Assembly: GCA_026770705.1 (NCBI GenBank)
Contig: JANJGN010000007.1
Span: 109,492,001-109,556,000 of the forward strand
DNA: 64,000 nt
Direction of reading: 5' to 3'
From: Isurus oxyrinchus
Taxonomy: Eukaryota
Shown piece by piece: positions 9,610-51,229 of the stretch (position 1 is its first letter; each line of letters opens with the position of its first letter). The translations under genes and the position numbers were made by a program. Below the pieces are notes generated by a model. That model ran no database searches. It was not told the DNA's origin and saw only the letters and a program-made list of their open reading frames with translations.

Positions 9610-9664
9610 ATGTCAGCGCGCATGGTTCTTCAGTACCTGACTCTCTAAGGGGTCATTTACACAG
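9610..9664 (+). CDS. Gene A leader exon MSARMVLQYLTL*GVIYT (in-frame stop)
   Basis: 55 nt with phase-1 donor G|gtacct; aligns with the gene B leader MTTRAVLQSMHLIWIIFI, which has the same length. Confidence 0.8.
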
Positions 9665-9837
9665 GTACCTTTCTATTGATTGCCCCAAGCACCTTAAATT
9701 TATGAAATGTTTCCGATCCAACGTGCACATTAATTTAGTGAACTGTAATTATGCTTTGTAGATTATATCTTTCTCTATTTACTTCCCCATGTCGCGCCTC
9801 GTGCAACTAGCCTGTAACTGACTATATTTTCTGACAG

Positions 9838-10158
9838 TTGCTGACCACGTTTCATTCAGAGTGTCCCAGAAGCCCAAACAAGAGATTGTATCCAAAGGAG
9901 GAAACATCACTTTCTCCTGCACGTTCTCCAACTTCCAGGGCGATTCCTGTGTCACAGTGAATTGGTGGAAACGGGGTGAGACTGAATTCCTGCGAGAAAG
10001 CGACAACGATAGAAAACGATTTAGCCTGAATAACAAATGTTTCAGTACCTTCCAGTTGTTGAACGCAAATTTCCAAGATTCTGGAGTCTATCACTGCGCA
10101 ATGATGTATTAAGGACTTGTAAGAGGAAATGATACCGGGTCACAGCTAATCCTTTACG
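9838..10158 (+). CDS. Gene A V exon (VJ-type Ig V domain, internal stop)
   Basis: ag|..VSQKP..NITFSC..VNWWK..DSGVYHCAMMY*GLVRGNDTGSQLILY|gtaagt; 321 nt, phase 1/1. Confidence 0.92.
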
Positions 10159-10705
10159 GTAAGTCTGAAAGAGGAGAGTGGAATAATCGTTAACATATTG
10201 AACATAAACGGGGACATCCCGTGATTGTTTTATTGCACTGATTTGCCACTTTAAACACGACAATTAATACACTTCATGACAAGTTGTATATAGTCGTGTT
10301 CTCTGAATAGAAGTGCTACTTAGAAATTCAATGTCACTCTTAGAATATTGTAATATGATTCAATTAGACTTGAGTTCCAAAAGCAAGTTATTCCCCTGTT
10401 GTCTGATAGAGGATGTTCGGAATGAATTCCAAACATGAGACTGAATGAAATCACCTATTTAGTGCACATCTTCCAGCGCATACAGGGCTCTTAGCCAATT
10501 TTTGAAGCACAGAATGTCATCTCACACACCGCCAATAACTATACTTACAGGGGGAGGGTATTGCTGAACCCCCTGCGGTTTATGAATATCATTTATTTCA
10601 CCAGTTGTCTTGCTTCCACAATGCAATTTGTCCCATGTGGATCAAGTCCTTGCTTTTAACAGCAGAATATTCGTCACTCTATACCACATATGGAGCGCGC
10701 CAATC

Positions 10706-10781
10706 CCACCCCCCCCACCCCCCACCCCCACCCCCACCTCCTCCCCTCCCCCCCCCCCCCCCCCCCCCCCCCCCCTTCCCC
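10706..10781. repeat. C-rich/poly-C tract in a gene A intron
   Basis: (CCCCCA)n followed by ~28 C; the Pro-rich ORFs here are artefacts. Confidence 0.9.
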
Positions 10782-11085
10782 GGCAAGGTTTACTTAGTTT
10801 TTTTCAACACGAATATTAAGTATTGAATATTAAACAGTCGGGGCTTGTCTGCTGAGTAATTGGAGTCTTGGACTTGATAACTCAAGTAAAAATGAACAGA
10901 TGCAAGTGTCTCTGAGATATCTGGATGAGATATGTGCAGATGATCGGCAGAACATTACAAGGACAGGAGATTGCGCTTTCGAATAGCGCTATTATCATTA
11001 AACGAACCGAATCTAAAGCAGGCTCAGGTTTAACTTCTCCCAGTGGTGCCTGGTGAATCCAATTGTTTTATTTTCTATTTGACAG

Positions 11086-11397
11086 TGCCCCCAACCCCAC
11101 TGAAGATTGTCTCCAAACCACCTGAATTGAATTCAGATGCTTCTTTGACTCTTATGTGTGAAACAGCTGCATTTTACCCGGAGAATTTCACCCTAACGTG
11201 GTATAAAAATGGCATAGAAATTACATTAGGCATACACAACATCAAAGTTCAGAACACCGAGGAACTGTACGAAGTTTCAAGCTTTTTGTCTCTGGTGGAA
11301 CCTGTTCCAAGCGAAACCAATTTTAGCTGCTCAGTAACTCATGCTTCTCTCCAGGCTCCAACTTTTGTCACTCATATTATTTCAAAATCTAACCAAG
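11086..11397 (+). CDS. Gene A C1-set Ig domain exon
   Basis: LTLMCETAAFYPENFTLTWYKNG...FSCSVTHASL is the C1 signature (CxxxxFYP, W, CxVxH); 312 nt, phase 1/1. Confidence 0.95.
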
Positions 11398-11984
11398 GTA
11401 CGAGGTAGACGAACCAAGAAGGTGAAACAGGTACTGTTCAATCCGTGAAGTATTATAACGTAAGCTTTGTACATGCTAGTACTCCTGAAGTTACTTCACT
11501 GCATTATCATTGTAATTATTAAAGAAATCATTAATTTACTAATTTTGACTTTAAATAATATAAACGAACACTATGTGTGCTAAAAACAAGTCATGTCATA
11601 TGGCAAGTAAATATTCTCCGTCAACAGTATTTATTTCCAATTTATTTCATTTGATGCATAACAATTATAATCAGGAGTTCATATTTTCTATTCCACTATA
11701 TTGCCGCACTTGTTTATAATTCAAGTATTTCAGTTTTTTGTTTCTGTGCTAAAATAGGTTTATTCATTGCCTGTGCTTGTTCGTCTTCACATTGCTTACG
11801 CTCGAAATCCATCCAGTGTAGATTCCGATCTTCAACATTTCCCCTAACGCCGTACCTTCCCTTCATACACCATCCCCATCCCCACGCCACTTCTTTTGCA
11901 GATTTCTGAAATTATCCCCCTCCCTAACTTTTGCACCAACCCCTCCAACCCTACAATCTAGTTTTCTCATACTCTTTAGGAAAG

Positions 11985-14960
11985 AATATTTGCCGTCCTC
12001 ATCTGGCCTGGTCTACATGTGACTTCAGGTCCGTAGGAATGTTGTTGACTCTTTGGCCTGGCAAGCCACTCAGTTGTATCAAACCTCTAAAAAGTCAATA
12101 AAGAGGGAACAAACTGGTCGGACCATCCGGCATTGACCGAGGGACCGGAAACGACCACGAGAATTCCAGCCCTGTAGTCCCTGCAAAGTCCTCTTACTTA
12201 ACATCTGCAGGCTTGTAGCAAAAATTGGGAGAGATGCCTCACTGACTTGTCTGGCAACAGCCTAACATGGTGATACTTACGGAATACCTTACAGATCACG
12301 TCCGAGACACACGATCATAGTGATATCCCACTGGCAGGACTGACCCAGCAGAAGAGGCGACACAATGGTGTACCATCAAGAGGGAATTACCTTTGGAGTC
12401 CTAAACATGGATTTCAGAACCCATGATGTTTCATGGCATCAGGTCCAGCGTGGGCAAGAAAAAATCCTTCTGATTACCACGTACTTTCCACCTCCACATT
12501 TCATCCACTCCTACTCAACTGATGAACCAGTGCTCCTCCTTGTGGAACACCACTTTGAGGAAGCATTGAGTGTGGTAAGGGTGCCCAATGTACTCTAGGT
12601 GAGAGACTTAAATGTCCACCGCCAAGAGTGGATCGGTAGCACTAATGCTGACCGGTCTTGCCGAGTTCTAAAGGACATAGCTGCTAGACTGGGTTTGCGC
12701 CAGATGCTGAGGAATCCAACAAGAGGAGAAAACGCATTTCACCTCATCCTCACCAACCTGCCTGCCGCAGACGCATCTATCCATGACAGTATCGGTAGGA
12801 GTGGCGACCGCACAGTCCTTGTAGAGATGACGTCCCATCTTCCCATTGAGGATATGCTCCATCATGTTGTGTGGCACAATCAATGTGCCACAGGGGATGG
12901 ATTTCGATCAGGTGTAGCAACTCAAGAGCGGGCATTCATGAAGCGCTGTGTACATCAGCAGCAGCCGAATTGTACTCAACCACAATCTGTAACCTCATGG
13001 CCCAGCTCATCCCCCACTCTATCATTGCCACAAATGCAGGGGATCAACTCTGGTTCAATGAAGAGAGCAAGCAGATACGCCAGGACTAGCACCAGGCACA
13101 CCCAAAAATTAGGTGTCCACCTGATTAAGCTATAACACAGGGCTATTTGCGGCCAAACAGTATAAGCTGCAAGTGATAGACAGGGCTCAGCCGTTCCACA
13201 ACTACAGATCAGGCATAAGCTCTACAGTTCTGCCACATCCAGCCATGGAGGGTGATGGACAATTTAACAACTCGTTGAAGGACGAGACTCCACAAATGTA
13301 CTGATACTCAATGATGGATGAGCCAGTGTAGAAGATAAGGATGATCCATCACGACCTGCGTAGGAGGACCCCATCGTGTCAAATGCTAGTTTTCTGCCAG
13401 TTTGACTCACCGCACGTGATATCAAGTAATGGCAGAAGGCGCTCGATCCAGCAAAGCCTATGGGCCCTGAAAATATTCCGGCAATTGTACTGAAGGCTTG
13501 TGCTCCAGAACTTGCTGCACCACTTGCCAAGCTGTTCCAATACAGCCACAACAGTGGCATCTACTCACCAATGTGAGAAATTGTCCAACTTTGTCCTGTA
13601 CACAAAAAGCTGGAAAAATTCAACCCACCAATTACCGCCCCATCAGTCTACTGTCAGCCATCAATAAAGAAATGGAAGGGGTCATCAACACTATTATCAA
13701 GCGGTGCTTGCTCAGCAATAACCTGCTTCTGGATGCTGAAATGGGTTCCATCATGGTCAATCAGAATCTGACCTCCTACAGGCTTGGTTCAAACATGGAC
13801 AAAAGAGCTGAACTCTCGAGGTGATGGGAGAGTGACTGCCCTTCATATCAAGGCAGCATTTGACAGAGTGCAACATCAAGGAGCTCTTGCAAAACTGGAG
13901 TCAATGGAAATCAAGGGGAAAATTCTTTGCTGGTTGGAGTCATACCTAGCACAAAGGAAGATGGTTGTGGTTGTTGGAGGTCAATTATCTCAGTTCCAGT
14001 GCATCACTGCAGGAGTTCCTCAGGGTAGTGTGCTGGTCCCAACCATCTTCAGTTACTTCCTCAGTGACCAGCCTTCCAAAATAAGGTCAGAAGTGAAGAT
14101 GTTTGCTGATGATTGCACAGCGTTCAGCCCTATTCCAGACCCTCAAATACTGAAGCATACATGTCCAAATGCAACAAGACATGTGGCAAGTAACATTTGT
14201 GCCACACAAGTGTCAGGCAATGGCCATCTCCAACAAGAGAGAATCCAACCATCGCCCCTTGAAGTTCAATGGCATTAGCATCACTGAATCCCTTTCTACC
14301 AACCTTCCAGGGGTTATTATTGACCAGAAACTGAAGTGGACAAGCCATATAAATACTATGGCTGCAAGAATTGGTCAGAGGCTAGGAATCCTGCAGTGAG
14401 TAACTCACCTCATGACTCCCCAAAGCATGTCCCATGATCTACAAGGCACAAATTCGGGCGTGTGATGGAATACTCTCCACTTGCCTCGATGAGTGCAGAT
14501 CCAGCAACACTCAAGGAGTTTGACATCGTCCAGGGCAAAGCAGTCCACATGAAAGGCACCCCTTCCACAAACAGTCACTACCTCCATCACCCACGCACAG
14601 TAGCAGCAGTGTGTGCCATCTTCAAGATGCACTGCAGAAACTCACCAAGACTCCCACCCACGATCCCTGCATCTAGATGAACGAGGACAACAGATGCATG
14701 GGAACGCCAATACCTACAATTTGCCCTCCAAGCCACTTACCATCTTGACTTCGAATTATATGACCGTTCCTTCACTGACGCTGGGTCAAAGTCCTGGAAT
14801 CCTGGAATTTTCTCCCTAACAGCACTGTGGGTGTATCGACACCACAGGAACTGCAACAGTTCAAGAAGGAAGCTCACCATCACCTTCTCAAGGGAAATTA
14901 GGGATGGGCAGTAAATGCTGAGCTAGCCAGCGACGCCCACATCCTATAAATAACGAAAAA
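11985..14960 (+). mobile_element. CR1/L2-group non-LTR retrotransposon, near-complete decayed ORF2 (APE endonuclease + RT), in a gene A intron
   Basis: DLNVH and PTRGEN..LILTN (endonuclease); NYRPISLLS, KAAFDRV, GVPQGSVL and FADD (RT); A-rich 3' end. Confidence 0.93.
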
Positions 14961-15502: not shown

Positions 15503-15616
15503 TTAGTCTTGTTAATTCACCTTACTTCTTGGTTGCCGGGTGTGCCATTATTGGATTGGGCGCTTTGGTGCTAATGATTGCTATTCGATTGTGGTACCGA
15601 GTGCAGAATAATGAAG
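15503..15616 (+). CDS. Gene A transmembrane exon
   Basis: VSLVNSPYFLVAGCAIIGLGALVLMIAIRLWYRVQNNE; acceptor ttaatcttgcag is identical to the gene C TM acceptor; donor G|gcaagg. Confidence 0.85.
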
Positions 15617-16304: not shown

Positions 16305-16348
16305 ATAAAGAAGAATGTGCAACTGGATCAAACCACTGCGAAGAAGTT
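16305..16348 (+). CDS. Gene A 44-nt cytoplasmic linker exon DKEECATGSNHCEEV
   Basis: tag|...|gtatgt; same length and phase (1/0) as the gene B and C equivalents. Confidence 0.8.
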
Positions 16349-17465: not shown

Positions 17466-17635
17466 ATATAGTGAAGACAGTGTGCTAATAGAGGCGTTTA
17501 TGCAAATCAAAATAAGTTATTGTTTGTGCAATTGTTTTCCAGATCAACTTGCCCAATGTTTGGTCAGTGGTACGTATCCTAGCGAAGACAATGAACTGGT
17601 TGCATAACCAAATAATTTCTTTCTCACCTATGCAG

Positions 17636-17737
17636 GGAGCAACAGCAGAGGTAATACATTATGCTGCATTAGATTTCAGCAGAACCAGAAAAGCTCCAAG
17701 ACGTGACTATACAGATGAGAGAACCATCTACGCTCAG
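17636..17737 (+). CDS. Gene A cytoplasmic exon with ITIM IHYAAL and TIYAQ
   Basis: 102 nt, phase 0/0, cag|GGA...CAG|gtagga; homologous to gene C 43636-43737. Confidence 0.88.
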
Positions 17738-17941: not shown

Positions 17942-18073
17942 ACTGAACAAGAAATAGCCCGAAACGAGCTCACGTACGCGACTCTTGAAATTGCTAGTTC
18001 AGAGAAAAAGGGGAAGTACAGCAAAAACGAAATGAACACAGAGTATGTACAGCTGCAGAGAGAGAAAAAGTGA
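17942..18073 (+). CDS. Gene A terminal exon with ITIM LTYATL and ITSM-like TEYVQL
   Basis: tacag|TEQEIARNELTYATLEIASSEKKGKYSKNEMNTEYVQLQREKK*. Confidence 0.88.
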   Translation, partial: TEQEIARNELTYATLEIASSEKKGKYSKNEMNTEYVQLQREKK

Positions 18074-22690: not shown

Positions 22691-22694
22691 TAGA

Positions 22695-29623: not shown

Positions 29624-29713
29624 TTATTTCCTTCTAGGTTTTCCATTTTTATTGGAACTAAATAGTTCGACTGCTGCGTAAGTCGGCGGGTTTTCAATTG
29701 CTTCTTGCAAGGT
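29624..29713 (-). CDS. Gene B terminal exon TLQEAIENPPTYAAVELFSSNKNGKPRRK*
   Basis: Homologous to gene A 17942-18073; stops before the last Tyr motif. Confidence 0.78.
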   Translation of the reverse strand, partial: TLQEAIENPPTYAAVELFSSNKNGKPRRK

Positions 29714-32700
29714 CTATAAATGCAATGATTTGTAAAATTAGTTCTTAACTTCATTAATCTATAGATTACATCATAAAACAGAATCGTCATCATAGTATTT
29801 GGATCGTCTTTAGGTTAGCATATTTACATTATTGAGTCACCTAATTATCTCGGGTAATTTCATTTAATTAATGGGGGTGGGCATAACCACCTATTCATTT
29901 AACTAATATCCAATCCCCTGAAATATGCCTTCAAATAAATCATCCCAAATTCACCGTGGCTGTTAATTTAGCTTAAAATTCATTAGAAAATTTCCCAGAT
30001 GCACTATATGTAATGGTAATTGCATCCACTGTTTCACAAATCACCTATTTGATATAATGCTGGGTTCGTAGAATTGTTCATACTTGTCCTTGTGCTAGTT
30101 TCTAGAACAGAGTACCCATTTAGTCTCATACGCCTGTCTCTTCCCCTACACCGAATTATTTATTTTCTTTTTGAAATAGGTATTGCCCCTTTTTGTAAAT
30201 ATTATATAGATTTTGCTTCCAGTTTTCCGGTATGGAATTCCACGTTCCAACAACCCTCTCGCTGAGAAACATTCTCCTTTGATGATAATATTAGATTTAC
30301 ACCCTCAAGTTACCTACTCATTGTCAGTGGAAATCATTTCCCCCAGTTATTTTCCAAGCTCCTTCAAAATGTGAATACTTCACTCGAGTCTTCATTAGTT
30401 TACATTAAAGTGTCTCCAGTTGATCCTCAAAACTGAAATCTCCGACCACAGTTAACAATCTAGCGGCATAAGTATTAGTGAGGCCGATAAACCTAAACTT
30501 AATTCCAAGCGATGAGCAACATTTCCAGGCAGAAATTAATCAAATAAAGAAAATTACTTATTTGCTGAGCATGTTTCACGGTCTCAGCCCGTCCAAATGA
30601 ACAGTCAATGATTCCCTACAAAACAGGGTCACCATCGTAATAGAGGAAATATTGCAAATGCCCATCCAGGTGAAGTAGTTTCGGGTGAAGGTCAACACAA
30701 AAGATCGAATTTAACACCGAGGACCAGGCTGAAACTCTGAAATGCTAACGTTACATGTGCCTCCAGGACGTGGACAGAATTAACTTTGAGTATCCAAAGC
30801 GTGTAACTTAAATCTAAAACTACCATTATGTGTGTCCCTAACGAGATTCACATGAAGCATAAAAAAAGCAAACTGGTAAATGTTGCAACTCATTTCGTTG
30901 TCATTGGCCCCGGCAATTGCTCTATGGCAACAGCTTCGAATTTTCTTGTATGGCTCCAAACTGGTTTCCATTTTACTTAGGAGCTCGCCGGGCGGAATGG
31001 CCAGAAAATCCTAGCTGTTGCAGGGCTGCGCCAAACTGAAACTAAACTTCCAATCTCAGGAAAAAGGGTATGAAGGCTTAAAAATAAAACACCAAACGTT
31101 GAATTTCGTTTGAAGTTTATTTTCCAGATCTTTGCCTAATGAAATGATTTGTCTTTGGGGATATTGGTTAGGAAAACAATGACATTGATTCATTACGCGG
31201 GTCCAATCCCGTGTAATTTTGGGTTTTGACAGCTGCAGTAGCTGCAGCCCGATATAGTCATGAAGGTTAGGAGGGACAGGGAAGAGCTGTTTTTGCCTGC
31301 TTTCTGTAGGAATAACTTTCGATATCTAAATGCTGACAAGCAACGTGAATATGGTGTTTGCGCCATGATCCGCCCTCTTCTCCAATGAGACGGCCGTAAA
31401 AGTCTCGCATTAAAATAAGCAGAACACTAAAAGTTAAGTTGGACCCAAATTGCCCAATCATTCTCCAGCCTTCAAAGCCTGCTTGTTGCTATTCTCAGAG
31501 CCCTGCTTCAAGGAGCCTCGCTCAAATTTTGTCCCATTCCAACCCGGCACAATGCGTTCTCATGGAGCCGGCCTATACTGGGGATGCTCCTAGACTGTAT
31601 ACTGGTCCTGTCAAAAAAATACTCTATCCCTGGGCCTGGACTATCTTGGTATATGTAATGCCTGCGCAAATGATTTTGGTCTGAATTCGGCGCCAACCTC
31701 GTCTTGTGAGTGTTTTTTACTGACAAGTATTGATGTCCCAGTTTGATATGGGTAAACTAGAGAAGCATGCAAGTTTACATTAATACTAAGCATGCAAAAA
31801 TGTTACACAAATCTAACATAGATTTGAAATTTTCTCAACTCAACGCAAAATTTCCACATTGCATTTGAAACATCAGTCGAAGGAATGACATTAACTTACA
31901 GATTCACCGCAATTGTTGGCTTCATCTTGTTTCAGTCTGCTTACTAAGACACAAAATTCAAATCGCCTTTGTTAATAAAGCAGGATATGGCTCAGCAAGT
32001 ACAGCGAATGTCAATTTACCGTGAAGACTGAGTAGGAAAGCACCATCAAACTCCGCAACCTGTGATTACGCCGTAGGTTGTTGGGTGGTAAATAGTAATA
32101 CAACATTGTTCACTGCAAGAAAAAAACGCCTGAACGATGGAGAAAATAATTTTGGATAAATTCTTCTCCGACTATACTTAATTTCATGGATCCGAGAGAG
32201 GAGATTTTCGAATCGGCGTGCGTTAGGAGGTGGCGTACCGAAAACACGATCCATCTTTAAGCTCCTACCAATCTAAAATAAATGCTGTAATCAAAGCCAC
32301 AGGCCTATTTCAAAAGCCAACAACCAGCAGAACTCAATTCCAGCGGCAACAGAAAATTGCGTTCAAGCTGGGATCAATCTTTTCTCGCCGCTGACTGGCC
32401 GCTTCTTGTTCGTTGTGATTTGTATTTTAATTAAATGATAGTGTGATCTTACCTTTATAGTTGTTGAATATGAACAACATTCTAATGATGGTCACCAACA
32501 CCAAAAATATCAATACGAACCCTGCGCACCCAAAGATCGGTAAATAAGATGAGAACGTAGGACTGTCACGACCTGAAAGATTAATTTAACTTTCACATAC
32601 TGAGCTGTACATTGTGGAGGGTGTCATCTGCAGCCACAGCCATAAAGAAAATCTTACATTGAAGAATTGTTTGATCAGTTTAGCATGGGTAATAAAATGT

Positions 32701-35700
32701 TAGTTGATGGAAATGCATTTACCGCTGTTTAAAACTAAACCAAGAGTGATAGGGGTGCAGAAGTGACACATCGCATCTTTTGATCTGCAGAAGCCGATAA
32801 GGTAATCATGAGAAGTGCAAAAACGGGCTGCTGACTCTTTCTACGGCCCATTTGTGCTATCACTCTGGGCGAACAGCAGCACTTTTCAATTCTAGGCTCA
32901 CTAATACTTAGTCTCGGTATCCTTTTTCACACTGGGGGACAGGAGCGGTTTTTATTGATGCGATGAAAAAAATATTTTTGCTTTAAGGAGTTAATAAATT
33001 GAAGTATTAATTCCCCCCAGCACCATGTGGAGTTATATCCTTGTGAAGTTTTACTCTGTTAGTTATGTCTAGACATATTCTTTTTCACTGCAGAATATGA
33101 TAGTAAAATTTCTTCCAAGACCCATTTGTATCACCAACACTCTACTAATTCTACACAATGTGGTTGCCATTATCTCAAGAAAATGCTCGAAATGCGGCAA
33201 GTATATGATAGCCAGCAGAGTATAACTTAATACCAATTCCCGAACCTATGAGAAACCACGAGCACAGGTGATGTTCAGAGATATATTTGCCATAGAGCTG
33301 TCAGGAATTCGTTCCCATTTGCCACTTCCGAGTGAAGAACTTCAATACATGCCTCAGACTTGCTCTGGTCTAAAGAAATCCACTTAACGTTACAATCTTG
33401 ATGCACTAACTCAGTGATTATCTACTTGAAACTTGACAGATTGTGAGCCAGTTTGACTAAATTGACCAGTGGGGAAAATTAATTTTGTTTTTTAGAAGAA
33501 GTGTTTTCTGGGTTTCGATGTTTACTGAGCTGCAGAGATGTATTTGCATTAAGCGCATTTCCAACCTCGGCCGTGGGAAAACAGCATGTGGAAAGCCAAA
33601 TCTGGCCGTAAGGCTCAAGCGCGCCAACCTACGCCGATAGTTTCACGCCCGGCCGAAGTTTGAAGTTCCCTCCATTTCAAAAGTTGTTATTATTCCGGAG
33701 TAGCTGGTAAGTCAGAAACTGGAAGCCTAATTACACTGGAAAAAATGTTAAGTTGCAACATTCGTAATATTGATCTGATTTTACAAGCATACTTTGTACC
33801 TTATTTCTATTGTCTGTTAGTGAATTGGAATTCAATAACGGAAGAAAAAGTTCTTACTGTGTCAAATGTTTTGTGTTCTATGAAAAGTAACATCATACCT
33901 GAGTTACAATTGGGAACCATGTAGCTTGCCATGGCTGGAATCTGGAGAGTCACATGAGAAACCAGACAGACATAGACAGTTCCCCCCTGGATAGGTTGTG
34001 CCTCTTCAATATAGCTCGAAGCTTCATACATTCCTGCTCTGCTGAGTTGTTTGGTGGTATGTATTCCAGTTTCAATGCTTCCATTATTTTTGTACCAAGT
34101 GATAGTCAGCCCCGCCGGGTAAAATGAAGCCATTTCGCACACGAGAGTCAACGAGCCGGGTACATTACTTCCAGATGCGTGAGAAACAATCTTCACTGGA
34201 GTTGGGGGTGCTGGTGAAAGGCCGAAGAAGAAAGTTAATACCCCGTCTATTCTAGAACATGGAGTAGAATTCACTTTTATGACGGACTTTTCCCAATCGC
34301 GAGGTTTGATTTCAAGTCGGCTATAACCATAAAAGAGCTATCAATTTGTGAGTCAATGCTGAAGTGAAAACATTACCGTATAATTATCGTAAGTTATAGA
34401 ATCATAGAGTACGATTACGAAAAATGTCAGTCGGCTCGTCGTGCCTGTTTCGGCTCTTTGGAAGAACAGCGAAAAACGTTTCACAGCTCGATTCTTCCCC
34501 CGAGCTCGACAAGAGTTCCCCTTCAAGATCTTATCTAATTCCTTTTGAAGTTTCTATTGAACCTGCTTCTAACACCCTTTCAGGCAGTGCATTCCAGGTC
34601 AAACAATTCGGTACAATTAAATTGTTCCATGTGTAAACTCACAAAACCCGACTTTCCTGTATTACCTAGATAGGTCGAAGAATTCGAAAGCACGGATGAA
34701 ACATTGGTGATGACTTTGTAGTGAATAGAAGTGTGTTTGTGAAAAGTTTAAATGCTTTCTATTTGCGACCCAGCGAAACTTCCAGGGTGACCTCAGACTG
34801 TGTCGCTACTTAAAATGAGCAGAGGAATTGTAATTCCACACCCTTCTTGTTGCTTACCGTAATCCGAGAAATAAAAAGGGTCGACATAGTATCATCGAGG
34901 GTGGTTTATAATAAACAAACAAAATGGCAATCAGGGACTTAACAAAGGCTAAACTTTCACGGGTTACTTCAACGTATGAAATACATCAGGGCATTGAGAA
35001 CTGCAGTGAATGGAGTTTGCACAACTCGTGAATAAATTCATCAAATTCTTTACCGATGACATATGCGTTTTTGAGGGGATCTCAGATGATTCAAATTCTT
35101 GAGTTAATCAGTCAGAAACTGACCAAAGCCACTGAATGAAGAACAGAAGTGAAAATAAAGCATCTGAGAGTCTTGGAGCTTACAATACTCTCTATAGCTC
35201 AATGGCAGCACCCTTAACTCTGAGAAAGTCATGAGTTCCATGTTCGACTCCCGGGATTTGCGCACATAATCAAGTCTAGCTCTTCAGCATAATATGGAGA
35301 GAGCGTTGCAATCTAATAAGTGTCGCGTTTCGGATGAGATAAACCCCTCCTGATATATACTATCCTCCGGCATTGTTCAGAGAAAAGCATTGAAATAATG
35401 CCATGGCCATTAATTATCCCCCAAACACGGTCACTAATTGCTTGGCAAGTGTCTCATTTCTGTTTGTAGAACGTTGCTGTGTGCAAATCGGCTGCACATT
35501 AAAACATAACGACATTTGAAAAGTACTTTATCGTTTATAAAACTCTTAGAGACACTAGAAGCTCTATATATTCGATTTAGCGCAGGAAGAGAGGGGTTCG
35601 TGTTCAGATTGACATTAGACTCAATAGGAACACTGTTAGCATGGTATTTATTTTTTGCTGATCAGGAAACCGCATTTTAACTGCTCAAAATATTATTTAC

Positions 35701-36477
35701 ACTGAAACCCCTTCATGTTATTTCACAATCTGCATCCGCACTTGAATTACATGAAAACGTTTCCTGTGCAAGTTAGAATGCATGACAGAACAGAAATAAT
35801 TATTAATGAAGCAAGTAAGATGTTGAAAAATAAAGAGCATCTGTATTTCAGACCTCAAGTTTTCCCATTGGACCATTTGATTGCTAATGTGAATGTTAAA
35901 GGAAAGCGCAAGGGAGCACGGAAGGGATTTTATTCCTTATTATTAATTTGAATAACTGTGAGACTGTGAGACAGCCTAGCCTCTTTGCAATTCTTTTACC
36001 ACTGACGACGAGCCTTGATCCACTTCCATTTGCGACCCTGTTTCCCAGAATTGTTACTCCGCAGTAATACACTCCAGAGTCCTCGACACCGGTACTCAGG
36101 AGTTGGAAGGAGGCTCTTCCTTTCTCAGTTACAAATCGTCTCCTGCTGTCTGATCCTGGCTGCATCAATTCTTTTTCGCCAAGTTTCCACCAATAAATGT
36201 TCATATCTGAATCCTCTTGAAAAGTAGAAAATGTGCAGCTGAATGAAATATTTGCACCAGTGATCGAATAGGTATTTTCAGGGGTCTGGGTCACTTCAAG
36301 CAGAGCATCGGCAGCAACTATTAAAGAAAATGAACATTGGTTTTAGTTATAAAACACAGGGAGACGGATAGAGAGAAAGCGAGAGACAAACATAAAGGCA
36401 AAGAGCGAACTATGGAATGTACCAATGAAGATAATCCATATGAGGTGCATGCTCTGAAGCACAGCCCTCGTAGTCAT
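29624..36477 (-). CDS. Gene B: intact V(J)-C1-TM receptor, 312 aa, with a reduced tail (single PTYAAV)
   Basis: Exons 36477-36423, 36317-36000, 34210-33899, 32572-32453, 31943-31900 and 29713-29624 are all GT-AG and in frame (939 nt). No counterpart of the 102-nt ITIM exon was found. Confidence 0.85.
31900..31943 (-). CDS. Gene B 44-nt linker exon VSRLKQDEANNCGES
   Basis: ttag|...|gtaagt, 44 nt; NNCGES matches gene A NHCEEV. Confidence 0.8.
32453..32572 (-). CDS. Gene B transmembrane exon
   Basis: GRDSPTFSSYLPIFGCAGFVLIFLVLVTIIRMLFIFNNYK; tttcag|...G|gtaaga. Confidence 0.88.
33899..34210 (-). CDS. Gene B C1 exon
   Basis: LTLVCEMASFYPAGLTITWYKN...YVCLVSHVTL...PNCNS; 312 nt. Confidence 0.95.
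36000..36317 (-). CDS. Gene B V exon
   Basis: VTQTP..NISFSC..IYWWK..EDSGVYYCGVTILGNRVANGSGSRLVVS; 318 nt. Confidence 0.95.
36423..36477 (-). CDS. Gene B leader exon MTTRAVLQSMHLIWIIFI
   Basis: Hydrophobic signal peptide, phase-1 donor G|gtacat. Confidence 0.85.
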
Positions 36478-42350: not shown

Positions 42351-42933
42351 TTTGTTAAGCCATGAACGTCCTTTTAAAGAAGCATACGGAAAAGTATGTA
42401 AGTAGATGTAAGAAATCCATTTATATACATGATAATAAGATAGCTACAGCATGACGATAAGCATGTCAAGCATATCTTGTAACTTACGGCAGTATGTAAT
42501 AGTTATATTTCAGATAATAGAAAGTTAACATGAAAATTATTTTCATTACATGAATATATTTCCGACTAATTATCTTCAAATCATTAAAGAGCCAAAGTGG
42601 CTATTTTATATACTGTGATATTAGAATGTGTCACGTCCCAGTGATTGGATAATAAAGTTATACACGCGCATGGGGATAACTTGCCCCTTCACTGCTTAAG
42701 CGGTAAACTGTGGCATCGGATCCCGGCTCTTTCCAACCCGCCATATTCATCTTCAGTGAAATTGATATGGATGCGGGGCACATTAGTCTACAACAGCAGC
42801 CGATTTCTGCGTCCAAAACTGTTTTTCCGTAAACCTTTGTGTTTTCGTCTGTAACTCAGCATACCTTGTGCTTCTTTTATCATTTCTACATTATCTCCTG
42901 TCTCCAATCCAAACAATTCTAGAGCTGCACATG

Positions 42934-42963
42934 TTATCTTGTCCGGGCCATCCCTTGTTTTAT
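42934..42963 (-). CDS. Gene C terminal exon coding part IKQGMARTR* (frameshifted relative to gene A)
   Basis: tttcag|ATAAAACAAGGGATGGCCCGG aligns to gene A ACTGAACAAGAAATAGCCCGA; out-of-frame remnants ITCAAL and TRYAEL follow. Confidence 0.75.
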   Translation of the reverse strand: MKQGMARTR

Positions 42964-45900
42964 CTGAAAATACAACATTTGAATATGTCGTTGATTGGTC
43001 GTTTTTACCAGTATGCAGTTTCTATTCAAGGCAGAGTCATCAGAATATTATACAAACAGGTTTAGAGACAACACACAGTAAAAGTCACAGTTACGTCAAA
43101 TACTCGGCCACTTCAATAGCGATGACACTTCACAAGTAATCGATATTTCTCTCACAACAAAAACAGAATTACCTGGAAAAACTCAGTAAGTCTGGCAGCA
43201 TCGGCGGAGAAGAAAAGAGTTGATGTTTCAAGTCCTCATGACCCTTCAACAGAACTCGAAACAAGAGGGATGGAATTTCAGTTGAAATCCACGTGGGGTA
43301 AGTCGGAGACGGAGACAGTCACTGAGAAAGGAGATATGCTGTGAAAGCGGGTTTTAGTAAACACCTTGTCAAACACCAGGAGAGAAATGGAAGGTGAACA
43401 AGGCAAAAGAGAGATACGGAAATCTTGTCGCAGCGACGAACAAAACTTCTTCAACGTAGGCATTAGAGCTCTGTTGAAGGGTCATGAGGACTCGAAACGT
43501 CAACTCTTTTCTTCTCCGCCGATGCGGCCAGACCTGCTGAGTTTTTCCAGGTGATTCTGTTTTTGTTTTGGATTTCCAGCATCCGTAGTTTTTTGTTTTA
43601 TCTCGATATTTCTCTCACCTACTTCTCAGACCCACCTGAGCATACGCTGTCACCTCCTGTTCACCTTTTTGTCTTGGAGTTTTAGTGGACTTTTTCAAGG
43701 CTACTGCAGCATATGTCAGGACCTTGTCCTCAGCTCTCTGCATGAGACAGAAAGAAAATATTTTGTTATCCTGTTAGTTAATTGGTGTCACCAGTTTACA
43801 AATTTTTTATACGTTTAGACAAGTGACAGTTTCAGCATGTTGGGCCTGTAATCTCAGCTCTCAAAGACTGGCTGTATTTAAGATTATTACATAGCTGTGT
43901 GTTAATGAAGCAACTAATTTCAATTTTCATCTTTCTTTACCCACCTTCAGCAGCATCCCAACAAATGTCAAATAATTTTCAAAACGCGATTTTAATGACA
44001 AATCCATAGAGGCAACAGTTTTTGCGAAATAGTTTGTGACGAAGTACCTCGATTATAACAAGATTTTTATAAATTAGAATCCTGTTCCTGGATCAACAAT
44101 TTGAACTTACCAGCTCTTCACTGGGGTTCATTATTGTTACACTTTCTTCTTTGCCTGGAAAATAATGTAATTTAATTACTTTCAATGATTACAATATTTA
44201 GTCACTTTCTATATTTGTACTTTCAAAAGTACTTTTAGAGGCTAGGTAAAGTTTGACGCAAACACGCACACGCACACATACACACACGTTTATATATATA
44301 TATATATATATATGCCAGGTCAGTGCTGCAGCTGGGATGAAAAAAACAAACTCTATGGATTTTATTTAAATAACTAAAGGGGGCAACCGAAAAAGACCAA
44401 GGGTTTAGTTGACTGAACGCAATAATTCAACGTAGAGCAGCAATGAGAAAACTAATAAAGAGGGGTAACATTGATTATGAAAGTAATTTGGCAAGAAATA
44501 TTAAAAAAAAACAAACAGGAAGAGCCTCTACGAATATAGAAAAAGAGAGTAGCTAAGGTGAACATGGGGCCCTTGGAGGATGAGACTTCAGATTTGATAA
44601 CTGGGAACAGGGAAATGGCAGATAATTTAAACCAATATTTTTCACTGGCCTTCGTGATGATTTCAAAGATAAGCAAGGAGCTAATGGGAGGAATGATCAT
44701 GTAGCAGTCTCTATCACGAAGGACAAAGTATTTGAGAAACCATTGCGGATAAAGGCATAAAAGTCGCCAGGACCTGATGGCCTGCATCCAAGGGTTTTAA
44801 AGGAAGTGGCTGCAGATATAGTGGAGGCATTGGTCGAAATATTCCAGAACTCTCTGGATTCCGGAAAGGTCCCAGGAGATTGGAAAACTGCTAATGTGAC
44901 GACCCTGTCCAAGAAGGGAGGGAGACAAAAAGCAGGAAACTATAGGCAAGTCAGCCTAACATCTGTCATTGGGAAAATGCTAGAGTCTATTATTAAGGAA
45001 GAAATTGCAGGACATTTAGAAAAGCTTAACACAATCAAATAGAGTCAACATGGCTTTCTTAAAGGGAAATCATGTTTGACAAACTTGCTAGAATTCTTTG
45101 AGGATATAACAAGCAGAGCTGATAAATAGGAACTGGTAGATGTAGTGGCTTTGGATTCCCAGGAGATATTCGATAAGGTGCCATGTTAAAGGTTATTGCA
45201 CAAGATAAGAGATCACTGTATTTGGGGCAATGCATTAGCATGAATTGAGGATTGGTTAACTCACAGAAGACAGAGAGTCAAATTAATGGGTCGCTTTCAG
45301 GTTGGAAATACGTAACTACTGGAGCGCCACAACAATCAGCCCTAGAGCCTAAATTATTTACTATCGGTATTGATGATTTGGAGGAGGGGCAGAGTGTAAT
45401 ATATCCAAATTTGCTGAAGATGCAAAAATAGAGGAGAGGACATGTTGTGATGAGGACATAAGAAATCTTCGTGGGGATATAGACAGGTAGAGTGAGTGGG
45501 CAAAAACTTGGCAGGTGAAGTTTAATGTGAGAAAGTATGTGGTCATGCACTTTTGTAGGAAAAATCAAAAGGCAGGCAATTATTTAAATGGAAAGAGACT
45601 CCAAAGAAGTGCAGCACAAAGGGATCTGTGTGTGAGCATGAAACTCAAATAGTTAGCATGCAGGTGCAGCTGGTAATTAAGAAAGCAAATGGAATGTTGG
45701 CCTGTATTGCTAGGTGGTTGGAGTTTAAAAATAGGGAAGTCTTGTTACAACTGTACAACTGGTGAGGCCGCAACTGGAGTACTGTGTACAGTTTTGATCC
45801 CCGTATTTAAGAGAGGATACACTTGCATTAGAAGCTGTTCAAAAGAGATTCACTAGGCTGATTCCTAGCATGAAGGGGTTGACTGATCAAGAACGGCTGA

Positions 45901-48900
45901 AAAGGTTAAGCCTTTATTCTTTAGAGAATGAGGAGCGATCTTATTGAAACGTACACGATTCTGAGGGGCTTTACAGGGTAGATGCTCAGAAGATGTTTCT
46001 ACTAGTGGGGGAATCTCGAACTAGGGGACATAATTAAAGAATAAAGGGACACTCATTTAAAAATGAGATGCGAAGGAATTTCTTCTCTCAGAGGATAGTG
46101 AATGTCTATAATTCTCTACTCAGAGAGTTGTGGAGGCTAGGTCACTGCAAGCATTTAAAGAGGAGGTGGATAGGTTTTTGGAATATCAGGGAGTTGAGGG
46201 CTATGAGGAGCAGGCATGAAAGAGGAGTTGAAGCCTGGCGCAAAACAGCCATGATCTTATTGAATGGTGGAGCAGGTTTGAGGGGCCTAATGGCCTAATC
46301 CTGCTCAGATTTCTTATATCATTCTGTTCTTATAAGACATTAAACTACACAGACAAGAAAATGTAATGCAAGTCATACGAGGGAACGATCAACCTGCAAA
46401 GTGCTCTAGTCAGCCGGACCACTGAACACTGTAACCAATTTTGATCATTAATGATCGCTCAAAGAGCTACCGGCTAGTGGGTTATGTGGGCACTTGGAAT
46501 AAATTTGACCCATGAGCCTGCAAAGGAAGCGGCTGCACCCTGCCTTTTGTAATGTAAATTCACGAGAACACTAAGCGTGCAGAAAAGCCGAACCATCATA
46601 TTGTTTAATTTATTGGCAGGAAGTGGGTGTCCACTTGTACTTGTCCTTAGCTAGAAACAACTAGACGACTTGCGTGACCACTTCACAGGCTATTTAAGAA
46701 CTGAGCTTACTGATGCAGAACTGGAGTCAAATGTAGTTCAGGCCGCATTGAACCGCTGAGATTCCGCCTGGAAAGGACTTTAATCAGTTACTTGGCATTT
46801 TGTGACAGCCCTCAAATTAATTGTACTGACTTTGTCTTTTTTTAAAATGAATCAAAAAACCTTCCCCATCTACTCAGGATTATCAATCCAGGCCTTTGTA
46901 TTACTCGTGCAGTAACATATGCACTACAGTGCCATACCCATATATTACCACATGTAACTTTGGAGGCTGAACAGTTAACAGAGGTAATATCATAAAGTCA
47001 GAAGTGGGAATGTTCGCTGATGCTTGTACATTGTACTGCACAATTCGTGACTCCTCAGATACTGAAGCAGTTCATGTCCAAATGCAGAGACACCTGGACA
47101 ATATCCAAGTCTTGGGCTGACAAGTGGCAAGTAACAGTGCAGCCAAGCAAGTGCCAGGCAATGACCATCTCCAACAAGAGAGAATTTAACCATCACCCCT
47201 TGATGTTCAATCGTATTACCATCACTGAATCCCCCACTATCAACATCCTGGGGTTTATCATGGACCAGAAACTAAACTGGAATAGCCATATAAATGCTGT
47301 GACTATAGGAGCACGTCAGAGGCTAGGAATCCTGCGACGAGGAACTCACCCCCTGACTCCCCAAATCCTGTCCACTATCTACAAGGCACAAGTCAGGAGT
47401 GTGATGGGATACTCCCCACTTGCCTGGATAAGTGCATTACCCACAACACTCAAGAAGCTTGACACCAGCCAGGACAAAGCAACCGGCTAAATTGACAACA
47501 CATCCTCAAACATTCCATCACTCCTCCACCGATGCACTGTAGCAGCAGTGTGTACCGTCTACAAACGCACTGCAGGGCTTCACTAAGGCTCGTTAGACAT
47601 CACCATCCAAACCCACGACCACATTGATCTAGAAGGACAGGGGCAACAGGCACATGCGAACACCACCACCTGGAAGTTCCCCTCCAAGTCACTCACCATC
47701 CTGACTTGGAATTATATCGCCGTACCTTCACTGAATCCCCCACTATCAACATCCTGGGGTTTATCATGGACCAGAAACTAAACTGGAATAGCCATATAAA
47801 TGCTGTGACTATAGGAGCAAAATCCTGGAACTCCGTCCCTAACAGCACTGAGGGTGTACCTACACAAGTGGACTGCAGTGGTTCAAAAAGGCAGCTCAAC
47901 ACCACATTCTCAAGAGCAACCAGGGATGAAGAATAAATGCTCGCTCAGCCAGCGAAGCCCACACCCCGTGAATGAATCAAAACAATGATAATTCTTTCCC
48001 ACACGGAGAACAATGTCAGGAATAAACTTGCATTTGCACCAAATCAGTAAAGCTTCCTCAGAGCACTTAACAAATGTTTGGATTTTGCATTAAACATTCC
48101 ACATTTCTGGGATGGAGCAAGTAGCTTTCCTGTCTTCACTTCTTATGGTAACCTAAATTTTCTGGAGATTGTTCAAAACCCGAATCCACGAAGTCATTAG
48201 TAAGAAGAATAGCGAGAGGACACTGGCAACATTTGTCATGTACCCGAATGTGGACATTTCCCTTGGTAATACAAAAAACAATCAGGTTCTTTCCAGTCTA
48301 ATTCTGTGAGAGATCTTACATTATAAGATTATGAATTCAATCCCGTTTTGCAGCACACGATTTCAGTTTCTGTTGCATCAAATAAGTAGCAATTGCGCTA
48401 TACTTATGCAGTGCCTCCTAGCATGATTTTTCTGTAACCCCTGAAGATTGGCATTGAAATCAAACGATTAAAGTAATACTCACCTCTCTTCTTCAAACAG
48501 AATCTCGTCCCAATGATGATCATGAATACCAGAATAGCCAGTCCACCCACCGCACATCCAGAAATCCATTGTTTGCCGTCAGGATCTGCAAGATTAAAAT
48601 AATTGGTGCTGGGTTCTAATCTATTTCGGTCACTAATTAAAAAGAGACATCGAAATAATCTGTTGGTTAAACTACTCGGCATATTTTCTGCAACTAGGCC
48701 GTATCTCCGGAGGAGAGCGATATTTCAAAATATTCTTAATTTATCTGTCTAGATCTTATGGCAAAACGAACTTCTTCTCACAAAGGATAACACAAGACCG
48801 GAATGATGTGCGAGGGGGAGCACTCGTTTTGGGTGTTCTAAGCATTGATATGCGGGTTAAAATTCTGCTGAGTACATTTCCATGTAGCGAAAGATTTGTT

Positions 48901-51229
48901 CTTGCACTTTTCCTTTGCTCTTACAGTATTGTTTGGTAAAATCGTAGCGATTTCGTGACACGTGACTCACCATTGTTAAGAAAAAAATGTGGAATGTATT
49001 AATTCGATTAATATGTTAACGCAATTGTGTGCAGCATATTAACTGAAGCAAGACCCTCCCTGAAAATGGCGGGAAACCAAACGCACGATTATTTGCTAAG
49101 TACATAAAGTGAATATTAACAAACAGAGGTGTTGCAACCAGTTATTCTACATGTCTGGGCTGCAATCCAAATGAAACATTTGAAACACGTTCCCTCTGGA
49201 TCACTGAAAGTTGGCATTGAGGCCTGCCAACAAGACTGACCTATCTATAATGATGCCAAATCAACATACTGTCACTCTTGGTTCTGCAGCTCATGTGAGG
49301 AAAACTGATAACAGAAAATGCAAAATCCATTGGAGAAGTGTTTTATAATAAGAACGATAGGTAAAATAATTGACTGGAAGAGATAACCCGCTTGTTCATT
49401 TTTCTTTTTCCAATTTGGAAACTGCCGAGCCTCCACAGACAAGTTGACGGCGAGAATATTATTTCGGTTTGAGAACAGGTTTGGGTCAATAATATTTTAC
49501 TTACAAAGATTATATTTTCCGGTAGTTTATTTTAAAACTATTTATATGATTATGAATGTCAATAAACACTAAGAAATGTCCTTATCTGAATTTTACAGAT
49601 TGCTAACCTCACTTCTTGGCCTGTTGGCCTCGTACCTGAGCAGGAATTGGTAACAGTGTGAATGGCAATAGCGGGGTTCCGGAGAGAGATGTGAGTTACC
49701 AAACAGATGTAAACAGCTTCGTTCTGCATTGGCTGGGGCTCTTCCAAAGAGCTGGAGACTTCATACAGTCCTTCAGAGTTCTGCCGTTTAATCGGATTTA
49801 TCTCAGTTGAGATATTGATGCCATTTTTATACCAAACGAGTGTGAATTCGCCCGGGTAAAACGCAGCCGTTTGACACACAAGAGTCAGAGACGTAGATGA
49901 ATTGATTGCGGGAGGCTTAGGAAAAATCTTTAATGGAGCTGGGGCAGCTACGAACAGAAAATTAGGAAAATCGGGTTAGTGGAGAGATATTGAGCATAAG
50001 AAATAGGAAAGAAATGGCAGCCTTGCTGGCTCCTGTTTGTTAGTAACAATAGTTCTACCTACTTGTCTCCCCAAGAGATAAAAAAAATCTGTCCAACACT
50101 AAAAATAAAAGGAGGGTTTTAGTGGAAATAGGATAGCTCGCACAGGCGGAGTGTGGCAACTTTAGAAATTTACAAGGTTGAAAGTTCATTTCATTGGAAC
50201 TGAATGTGCTTGAGAAGGTAGATAAGGATATGCTGTTTCCCCGCTGGGAAATCAATAATATGAGGTTCGGGAGGGAAAGGCCCTGGAATAAGAAGTCTCG
50301 TGTAAAAACTACGTTTTGAGATAAACCTGTTACATTCTACTGAAATAAAGTCATATATCTGAGGCGGTATCTCCTCCTCCCTCTCCGCACACACTCCCTG
50401 ACTTTGCTGAGTATTTCCAGCATTTCGTGGTTATACTTCAGATTTCCAGAATCAGCATTACATCGCCTTTGTAATAAGTTTTGTGTTTTATACAACACAG
50501 CAAATGAAATGTCAGATTCCACCGCATAATTAATATTTGTGTACAGAGTTTCACTGTAAACGCATAAAGTTACTTGATAATATCAGAGACAACATAATAA
50601 AATAATGACAACACAGAGCCTTTGACGTTCCCACTCAATTCGGTCACTTACTGCAGACAATTAACCGGGATCCTGTTCCATTTCCACTATATTTTCCCTG
50701 ACGGATCATTGCACAGTGATAGGTTCCTGAGTCCTCGAAAGTCGCATTTTGCAGCTCAAGGAAACCACCTCCTTTAGCATTCATACCAAAGCGTGTTCTC
50801 TTATCGGCTCCTTTTTGCAGATATTCATCCCCACCCTGTTTCCACCAACGTACTTCGACCTCTGCATTGTCATGAGAAAGTGGGATTATGCAGTAGAAGG
50901 TGATGTCTGATCCCCTTAATGTAGTTACCTCTGTGGGACTTTGAGACACGCTGATCGAGGTTCCTGGGGCACCTGTTATAAAATATATTTAAGGTTTGTA
51001 TTAATTAATTGCATTTCAATGCGAAACCAGGCATTTTAGTACACATTTTTTGCGTGGAAATGCAAACGAGTTTGCAGAAGGATGAAGTATATTGAATTCA
51101 ACTGATGTGGTAACTATGAAAGATTTGCTTTGTATAATGGAACAGCTGGGTAAAGAATATTCCGGTACCTGTTGAAGTGATCCTCAGGCGGGACAGTAAC
51201 ATGAACAGAAACATCACATTCGACAACAT
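42934..51229 (-). CDS. Gene C: intact V(J)-C1-TM inhibitory-type receptor, 323 aa (ITIM LTYAAV + ITSM TAYAQI)
   Basis: Exons 51229-51169, 50972-50652, 49947-49636, 48585-48484, 44154-44111, 43737-43636 and 42963-42934 are all GT-AG and in frame (972 nt). Confidence 0.9.
43156..43602. mobile_element. Short Penelope insertion with inverted ends and a 16-bp TSD in the last intron of gene C
   Basis: TCGATATTTCTCTCAC at 43140-43155 and 43603-43618; ~100-bp inverted arms flank a minus-strand 5' ORF piece ([15 protein letters not shown]). Confidence 0.9.
43636..43737 (-). CDS. Gene C ITIM exon [34 protein letters not shown]
   Basis: 102 nt, phase 0/0. Confidence 0.9.
44111..44154 (-). CDS. Gene C 44-nt linker exon [15 protein letters not shown]
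   Basis: ttccag|...|gtaagt; KEE...EE matches gene A. Confidence 0.85.
44262..44313. repeat. (CA)n/(TA)n microsatellite
   Basis: Seen directly. Confidence 0.9.
44430..46335 (+). mobile_element. CR1 LINE (3' ~1.9 kb), antisense within a gene C intron
   Basis: [46 protein letters not shown]. Confidence 0.93.
46610..46940 (-). mobile_element. Diverged tRNA-derived SINE
   Basis: Resembles 51600-51955. Confidence 0.5.
46990..47982 (+). mobile_element. 3' fragment of the 12-15 kb LINE family with an internal 92-bp duplication
   Basis: Aligns with ~14080-14955; 47222-47313 is identical to 47728-47819. Confidence 0.92.
48484..48585 (-). CDS. Gene C transmembrane exon
   Basis: [34 protein letters not shown]; G|gtgagt. 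Confidence 0.9.
49636..49947 (-). CDS. Gene C C1 exon
   Basis: [23 protein letters not shown]...[10 protein letters not shown]...TNSCS; 312 nt. Confidence 0.95.
50652..50972 (-). CDS. Gene C V exon
   Basis: [45 protein letters not shown]; 321 nt. Confidence 0.95.
51169..51229 (-). CDS. Gene C leader exon [20 protein letters not shown]
   Basis: Hydrophobic, 61 nt, ACAG|gtacc donor as in gene A. Confidence 0.85.

Follow-up and report, generated by a model that had tools for sequence, protein, structure and literature searches.

Three members of a SIRP-like VJ-C1 receptor family of cartilaginous fishes clustered in the genome of Isurus oxyrinchus

We analyzed a stretch of 64,000 nucleotides from the shark Isurus oxyrinchus (GenBank assembly GCA_026770705.1, contig JANJGN010000007.1, positions 109,492,001 to 109,556,000 of the forward strand), referred to here as the window. 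It carries three receptor genes, g1, g2 and g3, which are further members of an annotated but unstudied SIRP-like family in which a germline-joined VJ exon is followed by a C1-set domain; by sequence comparison the family has so far been found only in cartilaginous fishes. We consider it likely that the three genes are old paralogues within this family, that the family shares its design with SIRP, and that g3 is an inhibitory receptor. The cluster is evolving by birth and death: one copy is a pseudogene, and the two open copies carry shortened tails.

A tblastn search with the exon translations found three V and three C1 copies, and no more, in the window, which holds no other conserved gene beside the three. 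Paralogues share 35-42% identity in V and 46-55% in C1. Exon boundaries were read from the sequence, and each one was then checked by script. The gene models, in window positions, are as follows.

g1: 9610-18073, + strand, pseudogene
9610..9664, +, leader exon, 55 nt, with an in-frame TAA at 9646-9648
9838..10158, +, V exon, 321 nt, J-like motif NDTGSQLIL, in-frame TAA at 10110-10112
11086..11397, +, C1-set exon, 312 nt
15503..15616, +, transmembrane exon, 114 nt, donor GC instead of GT
16305..16348, +, cytoplasmic exon, 44 nt
17636..17737, +, tail exon, 102 nt, IHYAAL ... TIYAQ
17942..18073, +, last coding exon, LTYATL ... TEYVQL, then TGA
g2: 36477-29624, - strand, open reading frame
36423..36477, -, leader exon, 55 nt
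36000..36317, -, V exon, 318 nt, J-like motif NGSGSRLVV
33899..34210, -, C1-set exon, 312 nt
32453..32572, -, transmembrane exon, 120 nt
31900..31943, -, cytoplasmic exon, 44 nt
29624..29713, -, last coding exon, …PTYAAV…RRK, then TAA, placed by homology to Chiloscyllium P0174
g3: 51229-42934, - strand, open reading frame
51169..51229, -, leader exon, 61 nt
50652..50972, -, V exon, 321 nt, J-like motif NGTGSRLIV
49636..49947, -, C1-set exon, 312 nt, ending in NSCS with a membrane-proximal Cys
48484..48585, -, transmembrane exon, 102 nt
44111..44154, -, cytoplasmic exon, 44 nt
43636..43737, -, tail exon, 102 nt, with LTYAAV, an immunoreceptor tyrosine-based inhibitory motif (ITIM), and TAYAQ
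42934..42963, -, last coding stretch, ending in IKQGMARTR and a stop
42800..42933, -, relic of the ancestral distal tail, out of frame, with ITCAAL (for LTYATL) and STRYAELQTKTQR

The exon plan is common to all three genes. A split leader ending in phase 1 is followed by a V exon (321, 318 and 321 nt in g1, g2 and g3), a C1 exon (312 nt in each) and a transmembrane exon (114, 120 and 102 nt), all of phase 1-1, and then by a 44-nt exon of phase 1-0. A 102-nt tail exon (phase 0-0) and a last exon complete g1 and g3; in g2 the 44-nt exon leads directly to the last exon. Splice sites are GT-AG throughout, with the GC donor of the g1 transmembrane exon as the sole exception. These sizes and phases agree with the shared plan proposed in an initial annotation made from the sequence alone, and the span that it gave, 9610-51229, is correct for the outer ATGs. 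Its count of three receptor genes stands for g2 and g3, which are open, but not for g1, which is dead, with stops in leader and V.

Each gene encodes a V domain joined to a single true C1 domain. Pfam V-set scores in g1, g2 and g3 range from 30 to 48 bits (cut-off 26), with matches covering profile positions 1-108 of 109, and C1-set scores range from 45 to 48 bits (cut-off 21). The V exons reach their splice donors through NG[TS]GSxLxV (NDTGSQLIL in g1), the counterpart of FGxGTxLxV, in which an N-glycosylation sequon occupies the place of the J Phe or Trp; Pfam and the motifs thus uphold the single-exon V with a J-like G strand described before. Elements resembling a recombination signal sequence (RSS; heptamer, spacer of 12 or 23, nonamer) number 0 in the 64 kb, against 0.8 expected, as the initial annotation had stated. 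Since the germline V exon of g2 is spliced straight to C1 in an RNA contig with 0 mismatches, and the window holds no RSS, we conclude that the genes do not rearrange. Their assignment to a multigene family of non-rearranging V(J)-C1 type I receptors was therefore sound. The transmembrane segments have an uncharged hydrophobic core followed by a stop-transfer Arg at an equivalent position, and none of the three transmembrane exons encodes the charged residues used for CD3/CD79 assembly. An Arg in g2 that had been considered for adaptor pairing was rejected in that role, since in the alignment it matches the stop-transfer Arg of the other two genes.

Homology searches were run per exon, and full-length work used database relatives of the window genes, cited here by P numbers. 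A profile of the three C1 exons matched 431 proteins at E ≤ 1e-10 among 1.84 billion representatives. Matches of 200-400 aa with a single C1 are V-C1-transmembrane proteins of many cartilaginous fishes, including sharks (Heterodontus, Chiloscyllium, Mustelus, Scyliorhinus, Carcharodon, Heptranchias and Stegostoma), rays and skates (Amblyraja, Leucoraja, Mobula, Hypanus, Hemitrygon and Pristis) and the chimaera Callorhinchus, and the relatives at 40-79% identity all come from sharks, rays or the chimaera. Beyond the cartilaginous-fish matches the profile scores fall from 152 to 92 bits, where teleost proteins with multiple immunoglobulin (Ig) domains begin. No close relative from a bony vertebrate was present among the strong matches of two word-based searches, which had limited sensitivity and a length window. 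In a C1 tree of 81 rows the family C1 domains form one clade (Shimodaira-Hasegawa-like approximate likelihood ratio test, SH-aLRT, 99). One relative, P0014 of Amblyraja radiata, has two near-identical tandem C1 domains (V-C1-C1) where the others are V-C1, which implies that the domain number in the family can change by exon duplication.

The family is already annotated in at least 15 cartilaginous-fish genomes, under automatic names only. These names are inconsistent (SHPS-1-like, SIRPβ1-like, tapasin-related-like, NCR3LG1-like, CD276 homolog, Ig λ-1 light chain-like, MHC class I-/II-like), and the commonest, 'tyrosine-protein phosphatase non-receptor type substrate 1-like', is the name of SIRPα, so that a guess made earlier, that the family would prove to be auto-annotated as SIRP-like, was right. 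The companion suggestion that it is uncharacterised holds in part: no paper on the cartilaginous-fish VJ-C1 family was found in the literature searched (PRARP, Fu et al. 2019, J Immunol, cited in PMC10751288, lies outside this comparison), but its members are listed in public annotation.

Trees of the C1 and V domains place g1, g2 and g3 in different subfamilies, each with orthologues from other orders. The g3 gene groups with Mustelus P0178 (72% in V, 79% in C1), Scyliorhinus P0179, Heterodontus P0017 and Chiloscyllium P0032; g2 groups with Chiloscyllium P0174; and g1 groups with Heterodontus P0166 and with sequences from Heptranchias, Mustelus, Scyliorhinus and the ray Hypanus. Because the g1-type clade contains sharks as well as Hypanus, that subfamily is older than the split between sharks and rays, while the g2- and g3-type relatives come from several shark orders. 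Judged by these trees, the three genes belong to three old subfamilies.

Family members share the tail pattern xTYAxL ... TVYAQ(T/I)KQG ... LTYAxL ... TEYAxL. Its conservation across relatives indicates an ancestral tail built of ITIMs and immunoreceptor tyrosine-based switch motifs (ITSMs), as the initial annotation had supposed. SIRPα has a similar pattern of two TYAxL…xYAxx pairs. The initial annotation credited all three genes with SIRP-type tyrosine tails, which is true of g1, where the four motifs are kept (IHYAAL, TIYAQ/T, LTYATL and TEYVQL), but not of g2, which has one non-canonical motif, or of g3, which has two and then a stop. A short-tail subset was noted in other sharks and the chimaera (P0021, P0024, P0066, P0101, P0113, P0132, P0167, P0184, P0185 and P0187), with transmembrane segments ending in II(V/F)(D/E/N)H; none of g1, g2 and g3 is of that type. 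Such proteins may signal in a second way and pair with the ITIM-tailed members.

The frame of g3 is open from the leader through the tail. The first codon of its last exon completes TAYAQ to TAYAQI, an ITSM, whose tyrosine lies 23 residues from that of the ITIM LTYAAV. This pair conforms to [SIVL]xYxx[IVL] followed by TxYxx[VI] about 20-30 residues on; the PTYAAV of g2 does not. Downstream of the g3 stop, the relics ITCAAL and STRYAELQTKTQR occupy two other frames, and the tyrosine of the third motif has become Cys. An alternative acceptor near 43013 was set aside in favor of the family-conserved IKQG acceptor at 42963, a choice made by homology and not by reads. In g2 the 102-nt ITIM exon is missing and the last exon reads TLQEAIENPPTYAAVELFSSNKNGKPRRK before a premature TAA, where its Chiloscyllium relative P0174 runs on as …EKGTEYAEIR. 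The PTYAAV motif misses the ITIM consensus because of the Pro at -2.

Contigs of four public runs (X1, X2, X8 and X9) were mapped to positions 30700-36600, that is, to g2 only; run X1 (organism A) was classed as RNA by guess, and run X2 is DNA-like. The V/C1 junction of g2, 36000/34210, is crossed by a 241-nt contig of run X1, and the junction of the transmembrane and 44-nt exons, 32453/31943, by a 157-nt contig of run X1 and a 192-nt contig of run X8, all with 0 mismatches. Both joints in these RNA-derived contigs coincide exactly with the modelled exon boundaries, and the intervals left out are bounded by CT..AC on the + strand and so by GT..AG in the direction of the gene. Coverage by the DNA-like run X2 extends over all of 30700-36600, and neither joint is present in it. 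Thus g2 is transcribed and is spliced as modelled at two junctions. The V exon of g2 is present in run X9. RNA-derived contigs also run 28-40 nt past 31900 without a match in the mapped stretch, which fits a next exon at 29713. A candidate last exon at 31680-31624 (…ITYTKIVQAQG and a stop) was rejected, since the contigs that cross the 44-nt exon continue without a match in 30700-36600.

Several other observations were made in the g2 stretch. A 159-nt contig of run X1 lies at 32686-32841 on the - strand, in the C1-transmembrane intron, without a joint or a mismatch; its source could be intron retention, an alternative exon or pre-mRNA. Very high-copy short repeats at 34543-34597 and 35460-35495, in the V-C1 intron, reach a summed contig depth of about 17,000 in run X2, compared with 20-50 elsewhere, and also sit inside many unrelated RNA contigs. 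Only about 40% of the sampled words of 30700-36600 occur in the DNA-like runs X2-X7 (organism B), whose contigs carry many substitutions and small indels, most pieces being 90-95% alike to the window; the source of these runs is a related species or divergent population and not the individual that was assembled.

By its leader stop, its V stop and its GC donor, g1 is a pseudogene. The leader TAA closes the frame at codon 13, and the V-exon TAA falls between the F-strand Cys and the J-like motif. In the C1 and V trees its terminal branches (0.30-0.43) exceed those of g2 and g3 (0.11-0.18) by a factor of two to three. Its 4.1-kb C1-transmembrane intron holds a fragment of a retroelement of the long interspersed nuclear element (LINE) type at 12599-14400 (+), in which an open reading frame at 13784-14275 matches Pfam RVT_1 (56.6 bits), and its V-C1 intron holds a CCN-rich low-complexity run at 10690-10800 that several frames translate as poly-Pro or poly-Gly. 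The interval between g1 and g2 contains two copies of a repeat element of about 2.4 kb, inverted head to head (20000-22400 and 23040-25230). The arms are 81-90% complementary, with mirror-image GC skews of +0.41 at 20-22 kb and -0.49 at 24-26 kb, and the open reading frames of the element match no Pfam domain.

The relationship of the family to known receptors was approached by sequence, by fold and by gene design. When the chimaera protein P0070 was compared with the PDB, SIRPα (2wng, 52.5 bits) was followed closely by UrIg2 (9dmx, 51.1), Ig light chains (at most 48.5) and SIRPγ (45.4). A profile of 44 family sequences gave SIRPα 112.9 bits over three domains and λ chains 85-92 bits over two, the λ V-C chains being about level with SIRPα domains 1 and 2, and the window C1 profile scored SIRPα/γ (two C1 domains) at 58-60 bits, equal to IgG heavy chains (three C1 domains). 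No SIRP V was present among the best 60 PDB matches of the g3 V exon. Margins of a few bits put the ectodomain at practically the same distance from SIRP, Ig λ and UrIg2, and SIRP, on these scores, is the nominal best match. The light-chain-like ectodomain of the initial annotation is in accord with this result, the family being as near to Ig λ light chains and UrIg2 as to SIRPα. Separate V and C1 phylogenies, which it had recommended, gave a C1 clade of the family's own and three subfamilies, but contain no bona fide SIRP sequence; turtle, frog and lungfish profile matches that might have served as such are multi-C1 or mis-fused models and were not accepted.

The fold is similarly non-committal. 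An AlphaFold2 model of the Chiloscyllium g3-type protein P0032, built from a 44-row alignment, has two β-sandwich domains (mean predicted local distance difference test score, pLDDT, 87; predicted TM-score, pTM, 0.78). Its best Foldseek matches are Fab light chains and T-cell receptor (TCR) β chains, with E about 1e-13. Rigid two-domain alignment places B7-H6 (Z 15.2, root-mean-square deviation 3.1, 191 aligned), B7-H3, butyrophilins, Neph/Rst and SIRPγ within about 2 Z units (Z 15.2-13.1), and with values so nearly tied the fold singles out no family.

In gene design the family resembles SIRP in its non-rearranging V with a J-like motif followed by C1-set sequence, in its type I membrane topology and, for g1 and many relatives, in an ancestral four-tyrosine tail arranged in ITIM-type pairs. 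It differs in having one C1 exon per window gene where SIRP is V-C1-C1, in its size and spread across cartilaginous fishes with at least three old subfamilies, and in that the open window genes carry one (g2) or two (g3) tyrosine motifs instead of four. With Ig λ and TCR chains it shares the V(J)-C1 ectodomain, the split leader, the phase-1 exon boundaries and, in g3-type genes, a membrane-proximal Cys, whereas the shark genes have V and J in one exon, no RSS, an uncharged transmembrane segment and an ITIM/ITSM tail of their own. UrIg and UrIg2, likewise of sharks, also have a split leader and a VJ exon that does not rearrange, ahead of their C1 domains, and UrIg2 is the second-best PDB match. 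UrIg2, however, has at least nine C1 domains, with 0 mentions of an ITIM in its description (PMC12227049), and the VJ plus three or more C1 domains that mark UrIg and UrIg2 contrast with the single C1 exon of each window gene; the C domains of the UrIg2-like white-shark protein P0001 fall outside the family C1 clade. UrIg is linked to the MHC and UrIg2 to the Ig/TCR complex (Flajnik et al. 2023, 2025; PMC12227049); neither kind of linkage is seen for the genes of the window. NKp30 (NCR3) also has a non-rearranging V of VJ type, but no C domain. B7-H6, the best rigid structural match, lacks a J motif and an ITIM tail, and neither it nor NKp30 is prominent by sequence. The B7/butyrophilin combination of an IgV without a J motif and a CD80-like C domain is not seen here: the J-like GxG is present, and C1-set scores of 45-48 bits compare with 22.7 bits for the CD80-like C2-set_2, in g1 alone.

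UrIg and UrIg2 are homodimeric, and a homodimer was predicted for a shark g3-type relative. Mustelus P0178 (residues 21-239) scored 0.50, whereas none of 3 controls exceeded 0.00; contacts agree to at least 81% among three runs, with partner pLDDT of at least 80. Among solved structures, the mark used for dimers was attained by 21 of 30 homodimers and 0 of 23 single chains. The two chains are predicted to meet through the C-F-G face of C1, where Cys230 faces Cys230. The NSC motif after C1 supplies the corresponding Cys in g3 and in the relatives from Mustelus, Scyliorhinus and Heterodontus; this Cys is missing in Chiloscyllium, Pristis and Mobula members of the g3 subfamily and in g2 relatives. 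The prediction supports a P0178 homodimer, but the pass may reflect memory of Ig-like dimers.

The automatic names, the place of human SIRPα at the top of the PDB list for P0070, the likeness of the four-tyrosine tail to the SIRPα pattern, and a per-domain score with the window C1 profile at which SIRPα/γ equal or exceed Ig chains would all suit direct orthologues of tetrapod SIRPα/β, binding CD47, in which one C1 was lost or never duplicated. We think this unlikely: SIRP leads UrIg2 and Ig λ by about 1-4 bits, the g3 V exon does not bring up SIRP V among its best 60 matches, there is one C1 domain instead of two, and the drop from 152 to 92 bits leaves no intermediate from a bony vertebrate. 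It is also doubtful, in our view, that the family is an independent surviving branch of the VJ-C1 lineage that preceded antigen receptors, a disulfide-linked dimer nearer to Ig light chains and UrIg than to SIRP. The C1 tree does place the family toward pig Ig λ C and the UrIg2-like white-shark protein, with lungfish, frog and turtle multi-C1 'SIRP-like' proteins apart (branch support 91), Foldseek prefers Fab light chains and TCR β chains, and one member is auto-named 'immunoglobulin lambda-1 light chain-like'; the NSC Cys retained in g3 and three relatives and the P0178 score, with Cys230 facing Cys230, point the same way. That tree, however, is short (103 columns), quick-mode and unrooted, with no real SIRPs; the predicted dimer may be an echo of known Ig-like dimers, and its interface lies on the C-F-G face, where classical C1 pairs use A-B-E-D; other g3-subfamily members and g2 relatives lack the Cys; and the transmembrane segments lack charged residues for adaptor assembly. 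The fullest version of this idea, an ancient non-SIRP VJ-C1 line, sister to Ig light chains and UrIg and older than the split of sharks and rays from chimaeras, with g3-type members forming Cys-linked C1 dimers that signal through ITIM and ITSM, is a tentative proposal that we would not expect to hold.

Ligands of the B7/butyrophilin type, as opposed to receptors, are suggested by the best rigid matches (B7-H6, B7-H3, butyrophilins) and by the automatic names CD276 homolog and NCR3LG1-like that some members bear. Such ligands are nevertheless very improbable: SIRPγ, nectins and Neph score within 2 Z units of these matches, and the scores capture no more than an extended arrangement of V and C; Pfam favors C1-set (45-48 bits) over C2-set (22.7 bits, g1 only); family members combine a J-like GxG with ITIM/ITSM tails; and no B7 member appears among the sequence matches. 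That the local cluster is functionally dead, with working members elsewhere, would accommodate the two stops and GC donor of g1, the missing exon and ITSM of g2 and the frameshifted distal tail of g3. We regard it as improbable, because all ectodomain, transmembrane and proximal tail exons of g2 and g3 have open frames and undamaged splice sites, g2 yields correctly spliced transcripts, the terminal branches of g2 and g3 are short beside those of g1, and the two-tyrosine or short-tail state is common to the orthologues P0174 and P0178-P0180.

We therefore prefer old paralogues of a SIRP-like cartilaginous-fish family, one of them, g3, inhibitory. In the mechanism that we propose, the V domain would bind a ligand, Src-family kinases would phosphorylate the tail tyrosines, and the tandem SH2 domains of SHP-1 or SHP-2 would dock on the phosphorylated ITIM and ITSM and damp activation; the 23-residue spacing in g3 would be that of other tandem-SH2 docking sites. 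On this scheme g3 would be an inhibitory receptor and g2 a weakened or signalling-poor variant with little or no SHP-docking capacity. Inhibition through SHP-1/2 recruitment is the likely function. Several facts weigh against this preferred reading. UrIg2 at 51.1 bits and Ig light chains at 48 bits lie within the noise of SIRP, and since tails that combine ITIM and ITSM occur in many unrelated receptors of the Ig superfamily, likeness of tail is weak evidence of kinship. The tail of g2 has no canonical ITIM, its sole tyrosine motif being PTYAAV, and g3 has lost the distal half of the ancestral tail by frameshift, so that the local copies may be signalling-poor. Read support is limited to g2 and to two of its five junctions.

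To our knowledge, C1-set domains are nearly confined to the antigen-recognition machinery. The family is interesting but not new, as public annotation already lists members, and to these the window adds three further copies, one dead and two with shortened tails. The value of the window lies in exact gene models, read-confirmed splicing of g2, three old subfamilies evolving by birth and death, and a testable hypothesis of g3-type dimers. SIRP was viewed as near the antigen-receptor precursor in 2005-2009, and the likeness of an ITIM-bearing V-C1 receptor to a pre-RAG antigen-receptor precursor, which the initial annotation had also drawn, has been published for SIRP (Hatherley 2009, PMC2785349). 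A V(J)-C1 family with inhibitory tails in cartilaginous fishes has the right position in the tree to inform the precursor debate (for SIRP, PMC2785349). If the family is indeed a separate VJ-C1 line, it would be a living example of a possible antigen-receptor precursor on innate cells.

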